From Rebecca billardiae RCC1528 (lineage: Eukaryota > Protista > Haptophyta): a stretch of 64,000 nucleotides of DNA. The notes beneath the pieces are model-generated. The model had not been told where the DNA came from. It worked only from the letters and a program-made list of their open reading frames with translations, and did no database searches. The stretch's first letter is position 1. Every line of letters starts with the position of its first letter. A program made the position numbers and the translations under genes. The DNA lies in assembly GCA_965240325.2 (NCBI GenBank), contig OZ251240.1, forward strand, positions 1-64,000, written 5' to 3'. Below are positions 25,188 to 33,170 of this stretch, in pieces.

Positions 25188-27318
25188 GTTGTATAACCGC
25201 TCGGTTATGCGGGTATAACTCACCGGTAGCCCTCATGAGGGCGGGCTGGCAGCCCGGGTCCGGCTGCCCGAAGGTTTTCCGGTCGTCAAGCCGAGCCAGG
25301 CCCGGACAGGGGGTGGGCGCGGATCCGCGCAGTAGCTTGGCAAGCGATGCGCCTCTCTGCGCGCGCTCGCTGGCTGCATCCGCGGCTCGGCGGCCGGCGT
25401 GGCTGCTGGGTCACCGCGGCGCTGGTGGCTGCCCCTCCTCTGGGAGTAGCTTGGCAAGCGATGCGCCTCTCTGCGCGCGCTCGCTGGCTGCATCCGCGGC
25501 TCGGCGGCCGGCGTGGCTGCTGGGTCACCGCGGCGCTGGTGGCTGCCCCTCCTCTGGGAGTTGTTTCTTCCAGGTGCGTGTGCGTCGGCGGTAGGCCGCC
25601 CTCAGCCCTCGCTCTCTCCACTCGTGCACCTGCCCTGCTTGCTGCCAACGCGCGATCGGGCTGTCTGTCGCTTCTGCTCGCTGCGAGGGCACCTCGGACC
25701 CCTCCGGGTGCTCTCTGCTTTCGATGGGGGCGCCTCGGAACCGCTTCGAGGCGTCCCCGTCTGCAATCGTCCCATGCTCTGCTTTCGATGGGGGCGCCTC
25801 GGAACCGCTTCGGGGCGTCCCCGTCTGCAATCTTCTCATGCTCTGCTTTCGATGGGGGCGCCTCGGAACCGCTTCGGGGCGTCCCCGTCTGCAATCTTCT
25901 CATGCTCTGCTTTCGATGGGGGCGCCTCGGAACCGCTTCGAGGCGTCCCCGTCTGCAATCTCCGCATGCTCTGCTTTCGATGGGGGCGCCTCGGAACCGC
26001 TCCCAGGCGTCCCCGTCTGCAATCTTCTCACGCTTCGCAGTCTCGCTTGCCTTCATCGCCTGGCGGGTGGGTGCTGCTCTCTCCTTCTCTGCAGCCTCCT
26101 CTGCAGTCTGCAGTGCACTGCTGTGTGTGGGGATGCGACCTGCTACCTTATCTGACGCTACGCGTGCGCGTGCGTGTCTCGCGCCTGCTTCCCGCCTGCG
26201 CCGCCGCCGCCGCGCATGTCTTTGTGCCTACTCGTCGCACTTACCGTCGGGTTCGTCCTCACACAATCCTGCGGGGAGCCCCTCTGGGCCTCGGCCGCCT
26301 TCGGTCCTCGCGCTACCCCTTCGGCGGCCTCGGCCTCTTCGGGCCCCCGGCCACCACCCCTACGGGGTGTGGCATTCCACACCTCCTTCTGGGTGGAGGC
26401 CCTCGAGGCCTCTGCCCCCTGCGGCGCCGCGCTCGGCCCAAACTTGCGTTGGGGGAGGGCGTCGGCTGCCAGCGCCTGCGGTCTATCTACGTGCTCCATC
26501 GAGTACTTCCTCTTCGGCGTCTAGGCGGTCGGCTCCTGTCGGCGTAGTTGCTCGAATGCATCGGCGAGTCCTTTCTGGTCGGCGTCGCATCCTGGACGGC
26601 TTCGGGGGTGTGACCTAGTCACCTCACGCGTTTATCAACGCGGCCCCCACCTCAATCTACTCTCATGTGGGTCTACCGAGTGAGTTATGGTTGTATAACC
26701 GCTCGGTTATGCGGGTATAACTCACCGGTAGCCCTCATGAGGGCGGGCTGGCAGCCCGGGTCCGGCTGCCCGAAGGTTTTCCGGTCGTCAAGCCGAGCCA
26801 GGCCCGGACAGGGGGTGGGCGCGGATCCGCGCAGTAGCTTGGCAAGCGATGCGCCTCTCTGCGCGCGCTCGCTGGCTGCATCCGCGGCTCGGCGGCCGGC
26901 GTGGCTGCTGGGTCACCGCGGCGCTGGTGGCTGCCCCTCCTCTGGGAGTTGTTTCTCCCTGCCCTCCCACCCGGCTGGTTGCTGGGTGGGCATGGCCTGG
27001 GTGCGCGCGGTGTCGGGGGGGGTGGAGGCCCTCGAGGCCTCTGCCCCCTGCGGCGCCGCGCTCGGCCCAAACTTGCGTTGGGGGAGGGCGTCGGCTGCCA
27101 GCGCCTGCGGTCTATCTACGTGCTCCATCGAGTACTTCCTCTTCGGCGTCTAGGCGGTCGGCTTCTGTCGGCGTAGTTGCTCGAATGCATCGGCGAGTCC
27201 TTTCTGGTCGGCGTCGCATCCTGGACGGCTTCGGGGGTGTGACCTAGTCACCTCACGCGTTTATCAACGCGGCCCCCACCTCAATCTACTCTCATGTGGG
27301 TCTACCGAGTGAGTTATG
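25188..27318 (+). mobile_element. Non-autonomous split-direct-repeat element (A1-internal-B1-A2-B2), Ngaro/PAT/TOC1-like tyrosine-recombinase retroelement
   Basis: A1 25188-25568 (includes a 114-bp internal duplication), B1 26391-26689, A2 26690-26956, B2 27020-27318. TTATG is shared at the left flank, the B1/A2 junction and the right end. Confidence 0.7.
25713..26030. repeat. 64-bp minisatellite, 5 copies, each with a hairpin
   Basis: CTCTGCTTTCGATGGGGGCGCCTCGGAACCGCTTCGAGGCGTCCCCGTCTGCAATC at 25713, 25777, 25841, 25905 and 25969. Confidence 0.95.
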
Positions 27319-27420
27319 ATAAGGGGGCCAAGTCTCACCGACGCGTACGGTAGCAGCCAGCCAGCCAGTAGTTATTTATTTAACCTAGGCGCCCAGGTTG
27401 TACTTTGATACACGGTAGTA

Positions 27421-27463
27421 CAGTTTACTAAGAATAAGAGACGCACACAGCTCAGGCAGGCGA
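27421..27463 (+). mobile_element. Tc1/mariner-type TIR (left end), preceded by TA
   Basis: TA|CAGTTTACTAAGAATAAGAGACGCACACAGCTCAGGCAGGCGA. Confidence 0.6.
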
Positions 27464-28051
27464 CAGTAGGCGCGAAAAACGATCGATGATCCGCCGCCCT
27501 TGACCCTTCTCGCGCCGAGCTCTTCATCAGCATGTCCGCCGTCCGTCAACGACGTGAGTGGAGGGCCGTCGACGCCGAGTCGTCGCCGCCGAGCGCCTCT
27601 GCATGGTCGTACACTCCCCTGAGGGGGTAAACACAGTCCGGGCGCGACGTCATCTCATCACCTGCGCGCGAAATGCGCCCGGCGATGGCAGCGCCCGTGC
27701 AGGCGGCGGATGCGCTTCCGGGCGGCCGTGCTTCACGCCGGTCAGTCACCGTAACTCGTCGGCTGGCGCAGAGCGGGCATTGGGTGGAGTGCACCCGCTC
27801 GCTGTCCGGTGCACTTGCCGGCCGTTCATGCCCTGCGCCGGACGCGCCTCCCCCCGACGCCCGCCGGCATCGAGCGCCGCAGCAGGCCGGGTGCACGCCG
27901 CTCTGGGCGGCTGCTTTGCTCGCCAAGCGCCGCCATCGTGCGTGCTCTGGTGCGGCTCGCCGCTCGCGAGCGCGTTTGTGATCGACATTCGAGTCCCCCG
28001 TCCCTTTTCAATTCGATCGCGGCGGCCGCCGCCGCCGTCGCGCGCGCCACG

Positions 28052-30688
28052 ATGTCCACCTGGTCCGACGACACCTTCGAGCGGTGCCACTCGGGTCAGC
28101 GCCGGCCGCTGTCGGCGCGCAACGTCGGCGCGTGCGACGGGCTGCTCGGGTTCGAGTCGCTGACGGGCACGATCCCGACCGAGGTGGGCGCGCTGCGCGC
28201 GCTCTCGATCCTCGAGCTGCGCGGCAACGCGCTGTCGGGCTCGGTGCCGACCGAGCTCGGGCTGCTCACCGCGCTCGTCGCGCTCGACGTCTCGCGGAAC
28301 GCGCTGACGGGCGCGGTGCCCACCGAGCTCGCGGCGCTGCCCTTCGCCCTCGTCGACGCCGCCGCGACCGACCCGTCCGCGCCGCCCGCGTGCGCGCTCA
28401 CCTCCGACTTTGCCTTCTCGGTCTCGAACCGGTTCGCCCACCCGGCGCCCGCCGCGGTCGCCGCGCAGTGCGTCGTGCTGCTCGACGGCTGGCTCGCGCT
28501 CGCCGGCGCGTACGGCGCGTTCAGCCTGGCCGTGCTCGCCCTCCTCGCCGTCGCGCTGCGCTCGCGCATCTCGGTCGGCGTCGCGCGCACGGCGCGGGCG
28601 GCGCACGCAAAGGCGGCGGCCGCGGCCGGCGGCGTCGACGCCGAGGCGGCGCCGCGCGGCGCCGCGCTGCGCGCGCTCGAGCTGCCCGGGCTGGTGCGCC
28701 CGCCCGAGCAGGCCGAGGCGCCGCCGCCGCGCGCGCTCGCGCCGCTCGCGCCGTACGGCGCGAACCGCGCGTCCGCGCCCGGCGTGCTCGTGAGCGTGCC
28801 GGGCGCGCTCGCGGCGCTCGACGCGCTCGAGCGCGGCCAGCCGCCCGCCGACGCCGCGCGGCGCGCGCGGCCGCGGCTCGCGCTCGCGCGGCCGGGCGAT
28901 CCGCCCGAGGCGGCGGGCTTCGCGATGGTGAGCTACGCCTCGGCGCTGCTGCGCGACGCGCCCGGCCGCGCCGCGCTCCGCGCCGCGCTGCGCGCGGCGG
29001 CGGGCCGCGGGTACTCGCGGCTGTGGTGGGACTGGCTCGTGATCGACGTCGACGACGCGGCCGGCCGGCCGTACGTGCAGGCGCAGTTCGAGGCGGCGAT
29101 GCACTGGGCGTCGGCGAGCGCGCACGTGGTGCTCGTCGTGTGGCCCACCGTCCCCGCCGCGCGCGCGTACCTGCAGCGGCCGTGGTGCTGCTCCGAGCTC
29201 GCGACCGCCGCGCGGCGGCGCGTGGCGTGCGCGCTCGTGGGCGACGAGGGCGCGCTGTACAAGGACCCGCGCGCGGACGGCGCGCAGCGCGCGGCGGCGG
29301 CGCTGCTCGGCTGGGGCTGGCTCGCGTCGCTCGTCGTGGTCGCGCTCGGCGTCGCCTCCGCCGTCGACGCCTCGCCGCTCGGCCGCGCCGACTCGCAGCG
29401 CGCGCTCTCGCTGCGCACGGTGCTGAGCGTCGCGCCGCCCGCGCTGTACGTGTACGCGAGCGCGGCGCTCGCCGCGCTCGCGCGCCAGTGGCTCGAGGCG
29501 CGGCACGCGCTGTCGTCGCACGCGTACGGCTTCCCGGCGAACGCGCTGGCGTTCCTGCACGACCCGCCCCGCCCGCGCCCGCGCGGCGCCGTCGCGCGCT
29601 GCCTGCGCGGGCCGCGCGAGGACGACGCGGCGCGCGCGGCGACGCGCGCGGCCGAGGCGCTCGTGCGCGCGCTGCGCACGGCCGGCCACCTGCGCGCGCC
29701 CATGTACGACGTGGGCGACGCGCCCGTGTGCGCGGCGGTGCTCGGCGTGCGCCCCGCGCCCTTCGTCTTCGACCAGGCGCTGCTCAAGCTCCTCGCCCCC
29801 GGGCGCGGCGCCGACTTCTCGCCCGCCGCGCTCGCGGCCGCGTTTGCCGTGCGCGGCGCGCCGCACCGCGCCATCGACGGCGGCCGCGCGTCGTGGCTCA
29901 GCGGCGAGCTCGCGACCAGCGCGCAGTGGGCGGCGGTGCCCGCGGTCTCGCCCGAGTACGCCGCGCCGCTCGCGCTCTGCGCCTCGCGCCTCGCGCCGCG
30001 CGACGCCGCCGACGCCGACGGCGACGCGGCGCGGCGCGGCTGCTGCGGGCGCGCGCGGCCGGTGGTGCTGGCGCGCGCGCTGCTGGTCGGGCCGGCGCTG
30101 CAGGGCGCGCTGCTCGGCCACGGGCTGCTGCTCATGGCGCTGGCGGGGCTCGCGCTCGGGCTGACGGTGGGGCTGCACCCGGGCGGCGGCTGCCCCTTCA
30201 TCGGCTGCGAGCCGGGCGAGCGCGACCCGCCGCCCGCCGGCGGCGCGATCGCGTCGCTGGCCGCGTGCCTCGCGCTCGAGCACGCGCTCGCCGCCGCGCC
30301 CGCGGCCGCGCTCGCGAGCGGCCGGTGGACGCTCGTCGGCACCGCGCCCGGCTCGGCGCGCGCGCCCGGGCTGCACCTGCTGCTGCTCGCGCACCTGCTC
30401 GCGTGCACGATCTTCGGCCTCGCCGCGCTGCCGCAGGCGCTGCTGTACGACGGCTGGCGCCTCGGCGCGGGCGTCGCGCTGGGCGCGTACGCGCTGCTCT
30501 GGCTGCCCGTGCTCGCGCTCGGCGCGCTGCTCGAGGCGCCCGCGACGCTCGCGCAGCTGCTGCTCTGCGCGCCGTGCCGCGGCGTCGCCGCCGCGCTCGA
30601 GTTCCACTTCCTCCGCGCCGCGCTGCGCGTCGGCTACCCGTCCGGCGCGTGGCTGCTGCGCGTGGTGCGCTCGCGCACCGTGTCCTGA
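28052..30688 (+). CDS. LRR - TM - TIR/HET-like domain - multi-TM protein
   Basis: Plant-type LRRs (LTGTIPTEVGAL, LELRGNALSGSVPTELGLL, LDVSRNALTGAVPTEL), then a TM helix, then FAMVSY...LWWDWLVID...VVLVVW...YLQRPWCCSEL, then further hydrophobic segments. Intronless. Confidence 0.75.
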   Translation: MSTWSDDTFERCHSGQRRPLSARNVGACDGLLGFESLTGTIPTEVGALRALSILELRGNALSGSVPTELGLLTALVALDVSRNALTGAVPTELAALPFALVDAAATDPSAPPACALTSDFAFSVSNRFAHPAPAAVAAQCVVLLDGWLALAGAYGAFSLAVLALLAVALRSRISVGVARTARAAHAKAAAAAGGVDAEAAPRGAALRALELPGLVRPPEQAEAPPPRALAPLAPYGANRASAPGVLVSVPGALAALDALERGQPPADAARRARPRLALARPGDPPEAAGFAMVSYASALLRDAPGRAALRAALRAAAGRGYSRLWWDWLVIDVDDAAGRPYVQAQFEAAMHWASASAHVVLVVWPTVPAARAYLQRPWCCSELATAARRRVACALVGDEGALYKDPRADGAQRAAAALLGWGWLASLVVVALGVASAVDASPLGRADSQRALSLRTVLSVAPPALYVYASAALAALARQWLEARHALSSHAYGFPANALAFLHDPPRPRPRGAVARCLRGPREDDAARAATRAAEALVRALRTAGHLRAPMYDVGDAPVCAAVLGVRPAPFVFDQALLKLLAPGRGADFSPAALAAAFAVRGAPHRAIDGGRASWLSGELATSAQWAAVPAVSPEYAAPLALCASRLAPRDAADADGDAARRGCCGRARPVVLARALLVGPALQGALLGHGLLLMALAGLALGLTVGLHPGGGCPFIGCEPGERDPPPAGGAIASLAACLALEHALAAAPAAALASGRWTLVGTAPGSARAPGLHLLLLAHLLACTIFGLAALPQALLYDGWRLGAGVALGAYALLWLPVLALGALLEAPATLAQLLLCAPCRGVAAALEFHFLRAALRVGYPSGAWLLRVVRSRTVS

Positions 30689-31096: not shown

Positions 31097-32383
31097 CTAG
31101 CCCGACGCGGCGGCCAGTACCGCGTGCATCGAGTCGGCCCCGAGCGCGCCCAGGGCGGACATGGCCGCGCCGGACACGGCCGCTGCGCCGGCGCTCGCGA
31201 GCCAGACGTGCGCAATGCCGATCGCGAGCGTGCGGCGCAGTGCGCACGACGGCGGCAGCGAGGCAAAGGTCGTCGCGTCCACCGCCTTCTTGAGCGACAC
31301 GAGCGTGCCCGGGCCAGCGAGCGCGTACGGGTTGAAGCCGCCCGACTCAGTGCGCTCCACGATCGCCATCACGCGCTCGAGGAACGCCGGGTCGAGCGCG
31401 TACAGCGCGCGCAGCGGTGCGGCGAGGAGGTGGGTGAGCCCGTTCACGACCGTGCCCGAGCGGAGCGCGGCCGGCAGCGCGCGAGCCAGCAGCTTCGTGT
31501 AGGACGAGGCGACGACGCCGTTGACGACGATATCTCCGTGGAGGGTGAGCGGCGCGTGCAGGCCAGCCTTGAAGACGGCGCTCGTCGCCGTCACGAGCGC
31601 GTCCGCACACGCCGCCGCCTCCTCCGCGACGCGCATCCGCATCCCGGCGCGGAGGTCGCGCGCAGCGACGTACGCGCCGTCGGCGAGCGCGTAGTGGTCT
31701 TCCGTGAGCTCGAGGACGTGGCCGGACGCGAGCTCGACGCGCACCATCTCGTGCAGCGCACCCGCGCGCGTGTCGTCATGCGCGACGGCGTACACGGCCG
31801 AGAACGTCCCGCTGCCGTCCACCAGGACTTGGTCGCCGACGGCAAGCTCGTCCATGCGCTTGGGCCCAGCAGGCGTGGTCACGGTCGCGTCCGCCGGGAA
31901 GCAGCCGTCATTCTCAATGCATTGGCGATACGTCTCCCCTGTTTCGTCGTCGGTGATCCTGTTGCTGCACACCAAGTCGCCGCAGCACTGGCCGTCTCGT
32001 TTGCAGCCGCGCTCCAACTCCCCGATGCAATTCGGCGACGGCGGCGGCGATGGCGGCGGCGGCGGCGATGGCGACGGCGGCGATGGCGGCGGCGATGGCG
32101 ATGGCGGCGGCGATGGCGGCGGCGATGGCGGTGGCGAGCCCTCCGGTGGAGGCGGTGACGGCGGCGGTGCCGGTGACTGCGGCGGCGGAGGCGACGGCGG
32201 CGGCGACGGCGTCGGCGGAGGCGACGGCGGCGGAGACGGAGACGGATCGACCCCCGGGCAGCACGACGGAGCGCAGCCGCAGATGCTATCGTTCGGGGGG
32301 GCGCAGCAGGAGATGGCGGATGCTCCACCCATTGACAGGAGGAAGGCGACCGCCTGGAGCGCGCGCCGAGGCGTTGCCGTCAT
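31097..32383 (-). CDS. Secreted Hedgehog-type Hint (Hog) domain protein with Cys-rich head, Pro stalk and knottin-like module
   Basis: Signal peptide; G|CFPADATV cleavage site; LAVGDQV; LELTEDH; GLHAPLTLHGDIVVNGVVASSY; SRR-like HLLAAPLR. Confidence 0.9.
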   Translation of the reverse strand: MTATPRRALQAVAFLLSMGGASAISCCAPPNDSICGCAPSCCPGVDPSPSPPPSPPPTPSPPPSPPPPQSPAPPPSPPPPEGSPPPSPPPSPPPSPSPPPSPPSPSPPPPPSPPPSPNCIGELERGCKRDGQCCGDLVCSNRITDDETGETYRQCIENDGCFPADATVTTPAGPKRMDELAVGDQVLVDGSGTFSAVYAVAHDDTRAGALHEMVRVELASGHVLELTEDHYALADGAYVAARDLRAGMRMRVAEEAAACADALVTATSAVFKAGLHAPLTLHGDIVVNGVVASSYTKLLARALPAALRSGTVVNGLTHLLAAPLRALYALDPAFLERVMAIVERTESGGFNPYALAGPGTLVSLKKAVDATTFASLPPSCALRRTLAIGIAHVWLASAGAAAVSGAAMSALGALGADSMHAVLAAASG

Positions 32384-33170
32384 GGTGCAGGGGAGTTGGG
32401 GCCTCGGGGGTCGGACGTGGTGCCAGCCGGTGCGGCCAAGGGAGGGTGGTTGGCGTACAATACTGTGCAGGGGCCCTGAGCCGGAAAAGCGCGTGATCGT
32501 GATGAGATCGTCCAATCAGACGAGTCAAAGCCGAGCCGGGAAACAACAGCACTCGCTAGTGATGATAATCGAGCGGCTTAATGGCGTGACAGATATGTGT
32601 AGTATCATCACATACACTTACGACGAAACATGTACGACGACCTTTGTCATCGTCAAATAAGGGGAATTTATTAAGCCAGCCCTGTCGGTTACACTACTCG
32701 TACGAACTATTGTATGCGGTTCAGATGCGATAATTGACGCCTGCCGATGACGCTGCGACATGCTCTTGGCGGGCGTCGATGGCATCTGGCGCTGGGTTCG
32801 GCGGAGGCCCGCGGACAGCTGGTCCTCACACGTGTGTGCGAGCGCGAGTGCCGGCAGCGTCGTCGAGCCACGCCGGCTGAGCGCCATTCTGCGTGTCGCG
32901 CGCGGCCTTCGCCGCCTGCAGCAGCGCGCTGAGCCCGTTCGTCATACTATTAAATCGTGTTTGCCGAGCGCACGCGGCGCGGCGGCGAAAGCACTCGTCG
33001 CGGTTCCTCAAGGTGGGAGCGGATGGTCGCGTAGAAAAGCGTCCTATGTGGCGGAATCGCAACGCCACATCCCTATGGGGCGCGCTCAAAAAGGCAATGA
33101 CATGCGTTCTCGATTCCAGAGGCGAGCCTAATCAAAAGACGTTTGAGGCCCCATTGTTCGTATTCCTACT

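Follow-up and report, generated by a model that had tools for sequence, protein, structure and literature searches.

A leucine-rich-repeat membrane protein with a divergent TIR-type domain in the haptophyte Rebecca billardiae

We analyzed the first 64,000 nucleotides of contig OZ251240.1 of Rebecca billardiae RCC1528 (assembly GCA_965240325.2), hereafter called the window, and focused on a gene at positions 28052-30688 of its forward strand. This gene probably encodes a receptor-like multi-pass membrane protein, with leucine-rich repeats (LRRs) that face outward and an enzyme-like, cytosolic domain of the TIR type, and it belongs to a small family of marine protists. A first-pass annotation, made from the letters of the sequence, had described a Toll-like protein with three plant-type LRRs, one transmembrane (TM) segment, a TIR or HET domain that retains a catalytic-type glutamate, and further TM segments. 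The order of these parts stood. The simple Toll-like architecture did not, as the protein is multi-pass, holds its TIR-like domain in an internal loop, and also carries a second soluble domain. The features on which the reading depends are as follows.

28052..30688, forward strand: complete coding sequence, with a GC content at third codon positions (GC3) of 0.993 in this frame only and end-to-end 40% identity to Diacronema lutheri KAG8459137.1
28160..28375, forward strand: three plant-type LRRs (residues 37-108) with 24-residue periodicity, predicted to be extracellular or lumenal
28487..28561, forward strand: TM1 (residues 146-170), hydropathy peak 2.1, predicted to be an N-out/C-in signal anchor
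28916..29251, forward strand: divergent TIR-superfamily domain (residues 289-400), from an AlphaFold2 model, structure matches, and TIR_2 matches in relatives; predicted to be cytosolic
29195..29197, forward strand: Glu382, the catalytic-type glutamate of W378-x3-E382, invariant in 20 homologues and aligned by hhalign with the TIR_2 glutamate

The TIR-like domain carries the motifs S294-Y295, W325 and D327 (WWDW), and RPWCCSEL (residues 376-383), the pattern that had first drawn attention to the protein. Eighteen positions are invariant across the alignment of 20 homologues (M, S, Y, G, W, D, Y, Q, F, E, M, A, Y, R, P, W, C, and E), and the quoted motifs are therefore, on this alignment, not chance resemblances. 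The TIR box-1 SY, the Asp of strand B, and the glutamate of W-x3-E are all among the residues conserved throughout the family. The W-x3-E spacing is that of the WC-x-x-EL motif in plant TIRs and SARM1, the glutamate of which is given as a putative catalytic residue in PMC12489294, with reference to Essuman 2017 and Wan 2019. One relative, P0010 (972 residues, NCBI-sourced), has tandem TIR-like domains at residues ~180-330 and 366-504; its first copy is degenerate, with LSS in place of ISY at box 1 and with RPWC-x-x-E gone, and its second copy is intact.

Modeling of the domain with AlphaFold2 from the 20-sequence alignment gave a predicted local distance difference test score (pLDDT) of 84.9 and a predicted template modeling score (pTM) of 0.76, with elements in beta-alpha-beta order; a model from a two-sequence alignment was too poor for use (pLDDT 49). 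The first-pass annotation had proposed a structure search with the translation of about 28915-29235. When the modeled region was compared with the PDB by Foldseek, TIR domains came first (SPARTA TIR-APAZ, AbTir, TIR-1, RPS4, RPPT-TIR, MAL, and SARM1), with a probability of up to 0.99, and nucleoside 2-deoxyribosyltransferases (NDTs) were interspersed among them. VIA-align matched the model to AbTir with Z 9.5 (root-mean-square deviation 2.9, 89 residues aligned), to MapSPARTA with Z 9.1 (24% identity), and to SARM1 with Z 8.8. A two-copy complex prediction of the domain scored 0.00, in a run that left the alignment unused and in which the fold was uncertain.

Profile comparisons pointed to the same superfamily. 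Pfam TIR_2 (PF13676) was matched over this domain by six of the 20 family members, the best at 26.6 bits (E 8.9e-6), and in a library search the matching members were linked to the R. billardiae protein at E 1e-8 to 1e-14. In the ESM Atlas, TIR_2 was carried by nine of the ten nearest family sets; the Atlas feature search with the TIR-like domain gave no usable match (best 0.85, unnamed), and PDB sequences searched with phmmer and with profiles yielded chance matches only. The R. billardiae genome encodes at least 10 canonical TIR_2 domains. Comparison of the family with six of them by hhalign was weak (P 0.006), and its register was the expected one, with strand B, helix B, and strand C aligned and E382 placed on the invariant glutamate of the six TIR_2 domains. 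The domain at residues 289-400 is, by its predicted fold, a divergent TIR-superfamily member of flavodoxin-like type.

The N-terminal region contains three repeats of 24 residues with the pattern LxxLxLxxNxLsGxvPxELgxL. Searched by itself against Pfam, it scored 20.9 bits for LRR_1, where the cut-off is 20.6, and E 8e-5 for LRR_14. The repeats are kept in the D. lutheri orthologue, where LRR_1 scores 26.8 bits. Downstream of TM1 and around the TIR-like domain, the remaining parts of the protein are these, with membrane segments assigned from the hydropathy of the protein and of the family mean.

28760..28831, forward strand: conserved juxtamembrane motif (residues 237-260) of the AP-x-VVV-x-I-x-x-A type, from the full-length family alignment
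29300..29491, forward strand: TM2-TM3 hairpin (residues 417-438 and 457-480), at peaks of family-mean hydropathy
29651..30046, forward strand: second conserved soluble domain (residues 534-665) with GHL-x-G-x-M-Y-D-L-G-D and ASWL motifs, from 13 homologues; predicted to be cytosolic
30101..30544, forward strand: C-terminal membrane bundle, from the hydropathy of this protein and the family mean

The TIR-like domain is thus enclosed by TM1 and TM2. Downstream of it come about 480 residues with five or six hydrophobic segments, so that the whole protein has at least six. TM3 is weak in this protein and clear in its paralogue. The C-terminal bundle comprises TM4 (684-708), a weak segment (731-754), TM5 (773-798), and TM6 (805-831), with a conserved G-x-L-T-x-V-G motif at residues 757-763. 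In the second domain, D, Q, R, W, and L residues are invariant among the 13 homologues. No match to it was found in Pfam, PDB-profile, or ESM Atlas searches, and an Atlas feature search with the C-terminal half of a relative, P0005, gave no usable match. The idea that the second domain completes a split TIR fold found no support, as hhalign did not detect any resemblance between it and the C-terminal half of TIR_2.

The topology of the protein was predicted from the distribution of positive charges. In the 15 residues on either side of the last TM segment before the TIR-like domain, lysine and arginine summed over 16 family members number nine on the N-terminal side and 45 on the C-terminal side; around TM1 of the R. 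billardiae protein itself the counts are zero and four. The positive-inside rule thus predicts a cytosolic TIR-like domain. Three relatives with a signal-peptide-like N-terminus and a single TM segment (P0005, P0012, and P0014) agree with this placement, and the same side is obtained for the TIR-like domain of the paralogue, whose N-terminus is soluble and followed by about four TM segments. The second domain is likewise predicted to be cytosolic, because the TM2-TM3 hairpin would return the chain to that side. The LRRs are predicted to lie outside the cell or in a lumen, held by TM1 as a signal anchor of N-out type that is not cleaved. The LRRs and the TIR-like domain would therefore lie on opposite sides of the membrane, as the reading in the first-pass annotation requires. 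An N-out anchor is possible, but it is less usual for an N-terminal region of 145 residues, and it is here that the receptor model is weakest.

The protein belongs to a family with a conserved chassis. When a profile built from two sequences of the domain was run with HMMER against 1.84 billion proteins, 33 cluster representatives scored E≤1e-3, and 19 of these also reached E≤1e-10. A word-index protein search with the TIR-like domain found nothing, and the same search with P0034 returned the query's own cluster only. A full-length orthologue with 40% identity is encoded by Diacronema lutheri (KAG8459137.1, UniRef A0A8J5XE91), where it is listed as a "hypothetical protein". The alignment spans the LRRs through the last residues, RTVS, and the D. 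lutheri model, too, has no signal peptide. Sequence comparison thus indicates that the whole architecture is conserved between the two species. The D. lutheri protein has the same layout of LRRs, TM segment, TIR-like domain, and multiple TM segments; being unannotated, it adds conservation but not function. The other members come from marine metagenome and transcriptome assemblies, and one representative is an MMETSP transcript. In a scan of viral contigs, the family alignment detected no relative.

About 30 relatives keep the chassis and differ in their N-termini. The order common to the family appears to be a variable N-terminus, TM1, the TIR-like domain, the TM hairpin, the second domain, and three or four TM helices. 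P0005 (1158 residues, ENA assembly) has a signal-peptide-like start and, as its ectodomain, four DUF285 repeat blocks (E 1.8e-144); judged from the domain matches, this cap gives the family a second repeat-type ectodomain, independent of the LRRs. In P0012 and P0014, Ser/Thr- or Cys-rich regions follow a signal-peptide-like start, and some relatives have just a few residues ahead of TM1. LRRs were found only in the two pavlovophyte-type orthologues. Because the relatives and the paralogue without LRRs carry other N-termini, the LRR cap is, on the sequences compared, a lineage-specific addition to a conserved TM/TIR-like chassis.

The R. billardiae genome (72 Mb, 41 contigs) holds a single paralogue, on contig C5 (L003:4607-7678), with 34% identity from residue 211 on. 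In place of the LRRs it has a soluble stretch and four TM segments. At its start (L003:4607-4760), before these N-terminal TM segments, lies a short motif, VVVPPG...L.V....G..V.V.IP.G..PGQ.F. The paralogue also occurs on a Logan contig. This contig has 100% collinearity with the genome and terminates in simple repeats, and it therefore does not demonstrate transcription of the paralogue. GC3 is 0.99-1.00 throughout the gene at 28052-30688 and ~0.6-0.9 in the C5 paralogue, a contrast that suggests strong regional or expression-linked GC3 heterogeneity in this genome.

The gene at 28052-30688 is intact, with one exon and no interruption, and encodes 878 residues followed by TGA. In the frame from the ATG at 28052 to the TGA at 30686-30688, the GC content by codon position is 0.82/0.61/0.993. 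The third-position signal has a sharp onset at ~28020-28050 and stops at the TGA. The GC content around the gene is ~80%, and this accounts for the long open reading frames (ORFs) on the other strand and in another forward frame, which are by-products of it. Two of these, a 953-residue ORF on the opposite strand and a 918-residue ORF in the +1 frame, were rejected as coding; both are Arg-rich and have the GC3 signal at the wrong codon position. The N-terminus of the 878-residue protein is hydrophilic, with no signal peptide found, and neither an ATG-led hydrophobic peptide nor a GC3-rich exon was found within 1 kb upstream of 28052. Just 5' of the gene, at window positions 25286-27250, ORF segments are directly repeated, with identical peptides of 30-60 residues occurring two to three times in several frames; these repeats limit the likely promoter region to ~27320-28050. 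On the opposite strand, at 31097-32515, a neighboring gene encodes a long Pro/Ser-rich (PPSPPP) stalk. No functional link between this neighbor and the gene at 28052-30688 is evident.

Several results weigh against a receptor with an enzyme-like TIR-type domain. On its own, the R. billardiae protein scores 12.5 bits on TIR_2, which is insignificant (E 0.21), and the TIR assignment therefore draws on the family and not on the lone sequence. None of the family members attains the curated TIR_2 cut-off of 28 bits, and the hhalign probability against the canonical TIR_2 alignment is 6%. The Foldseek E-values are weak (0.02-0.2). In VIA-align, NDT-type chains match the TIRs in score (Z 8.5-9.6), and the tool's own note states that best Z values of 7-8 are frequent for models without a clear match. 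The AlphaFold2 model has four strands (positions 13-18, 45-49, 83-88, and 116-120) before TM2, and it may lack strand E and helix E of a complete TIR. The N-terminal region of ~145 residues has no signal peptide ahead of it, and the outward position of the LRRs is therefore based on the charge bias and on the relatives. The C-terminal helices may number three or four.

The absent fifth strand and the scores below the TIR_2 cut-off would also suit a TIR-like domain that is a non-catalytic scaffold for homotypic contacts, as in animal Toll-like receptors (TLRs) and their adaptors, with a structural role for the glutamate. Many TIR domains signal as adaptors, as is generally known and as bioRxiv 10.64898/2026.04.20.719644 restates. 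We consider a pure scaffold rather unlikely, as S, Y, D, W, and E never vary among members that are otherwise 25-54% identical, a pattern typical of an active site, and as the nearest structure and sequence matches (AbTir, SPARTA, and SARM1) are enzymatic TIRs. A domain related to the NDTs and nucleotide N-glycosidases, acting on nucleosides or nucleotides and not on NAD+, would account for the best VIA-align match, the 2-deoxyribosyltransferase 6evs (Z 9.6), for the many NDT, DNPH1, and MilB chains at Z 7-9, and for the one Atlas set that is an NDT. It is nevertheless highly unlikely. Identity is 5-13% to the NDTs versus 14-26% to the TIRs, PF05014 (the NDT profile) was matched by none of the 20 members at E≤10 whereas TIR_2 was matched by six, and the box-1 SY and W-x3-E are TIR features.

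The first-pass annotation had left the domain as TIR or HET, and the TIR half of that call is the one borne out by the fold. A HET domain in the fungal sense, a module that induces cell death and is kin to TIR without being a TIR proper, appears very unlikely. The motif order SY, W-x-D, helix, R-x-W-x-x-E does resemble the three blocks of HET (PF06985). A search of the 72-Mb genome with the family profile also returned, as two of its three best non-self matches, the near-identical copies L011 (G000:C13:2450404-2451102, forward strand) and L013 (G000:C12:2126436-2127134, reverse strand), which weakly match TIR_2 (E 0.003-0.005), TIR (E 0.017), and HET (E 0.019-0.19). The L011/L013-type domain is linked to the family with an hhalign probability of 84% (E 7e-6), and the two copies may, from these matches, form a bridge between TIR and HET in R. 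billardiae. Their motifs read FVSHCW, LWLDKACCPQ, and SRAWCVYEW. Against a HET assignment, Pfam HET matched none of the 20 family members, even at E≤10, the Pfam and Atlas matches name TIR_2, and the membrane context is unlike that of fungal HET proteins. A whole-genome HET search found none, although it also found none in its 14 control genomes and is hence uninformative. Remote homology between HET and TIR has been published (PMC10197012, which cites PMC4986451). The family sits within this TIR/HET continuum, nearer to TIR_2 by every named match.

The other main question is whether the protein is a surface receptor at all. The LRRs could be cytosolic, or the protein could reside in an internal membrane, with a housekeeping membrane function unrelated to immunity. 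The lack of a signal peptide in both the R. billardiae protein and the D. lutheri model would fit this, as would the paralogue, in which a soluble N-terminus and four TM segments take the place of the LRRs, and the fact that the conserved length is mostly membrane bundle plus a second domain of no recognized fold. These points leave such a role, in our judgment, a minor contender. The charge bias toward a positive inside is strong and holds consistently through the family, several relatives combine signal-peptide-like N-termini with repeat ectodomains, and the N-termini vary on a conserved chassis as sensor swapping would predict.

For a receptor-like protein with a TIR-type domain, the following mechanism can be proposed. 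The LRR cap would bind a ligand, upon which the protein would cluster. The cytosolic TIR-like domains would thereby meet and might act like enzymatic TIRs, by NAD+ cleavage or production of a nucleotide signal; alternatively, they might recruit partners or scaffold homotypic contacts. Regulation or output would fall to the second cytosolic domain together with the C-terminal membrane bundle. By analogy with enzymatic TIRs, we infer a possible NADase activity and a role in immunity or cell death. A bolder version, which we think quite unlikely, is that the family is a self-contained sensor, enzyme, and effector, in which a swappable ectodomain (LRR, DUF285, or others) triggers the TIR-like domain. 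A nucleotide product or a conformational change would then act on the adjacent cytosolic domain, and the protein's own membrane bundle would open. If this is true, eukaryotic phytoplankton would possess a new class of TIR-coupled membrane effector, for defense or programmed cell death.

Comparison with known systems places the protein among TIR proteins and sets its architecture apart. With SARM1, AbTir, SPARTA TIR-APAZ, and plant TIRs, it has in common the flavodoxin-like beta-alpha fold, the box-1 SY after strand A, the Asp ending strand B, and the W-x3-E opening helix C. It differs from these enzymatic TIRs in falling below the Pfam cut-off, in its four modeled strands, and in the placement of the domain, which forms an internal loop flanked by TM helices within a multi-pass protein. 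Proteins with an ectodomain, a TM segment, and a TIR domain that keeps a catalytic-type glutamate are described from the haptophyte Gephyrocapsa huxleyi, and some of them are induced within 0.5 h after virus addition (PMC12489294). The same study proposes that they generate signals in a receptor-like way during viral infection; it states that LRR and NBS domains are absent from them, and it detected them with standard TIR Pfam profiles (PMC12489294). The R. billardiae protein resembles them as a haptophyte protein with an outside region, a TM segment, and an inside TIR-type domain with the glutamate. However, its domain is far more divergent, LRRs are present, and a second domain and further TM segments follow.

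By definition, TLRs have a signal peptide, several LRRs, a single TM segment, and an intracellular TIR domain at the C-terminus (PMC6040629). Like animal and choanoflagellate TLRs, the R. billardiae protein has LRRs, a TM segment, and then a TIR-type domain across the membrane (the sides being predicted). Multiple LRRs are present, with an outside location suggested by charge bias; they are three and of plant type, no signal peptide precedes them, and in place of a single TM segment and a C-terminal TIR there are at least six hydrophobic segments and an internal TIR-like domain. The protein has no sequence kinship with TLRs beyond the superfamily. On sequence grounds, the TLR-like order was assembled independently of animal TLRs, because the LRRs are confined to the two pavlovophyte-type orthologues, relatives have other N-termini, and kinship with TLRs does not extend beyond the superfamily. 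The independent origin suggested in the first-pass annotation is thus retained. Literature searches on HET/TIR in algae, TIR and LRRs in haptophytes, TLR-like convergence in protists, TIR in D. lutheri, and membrane TIR NADases of microalgae found, in the collection covered, no paper on this family or its architecture.

TIR domains link the immunity of bacteria, plants, and animals, and recent work implicates them in how a bloom-forming haptophyte responds to its virus (PMC12489294). In pavlovophyte-type haptophytes, LRRs appear to have been placed on a TIR-type membrane protein, giving a TLR-like order from unrelated pieces. The family retains catalytic-type residues and a conserved multi-pass chassis, and since D. 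lutheri is culturable, the orthologue is accessible to experiment. TIR repertoires of algae are likely undercounted, because families such as this one are too divergent for standard survey profiles.

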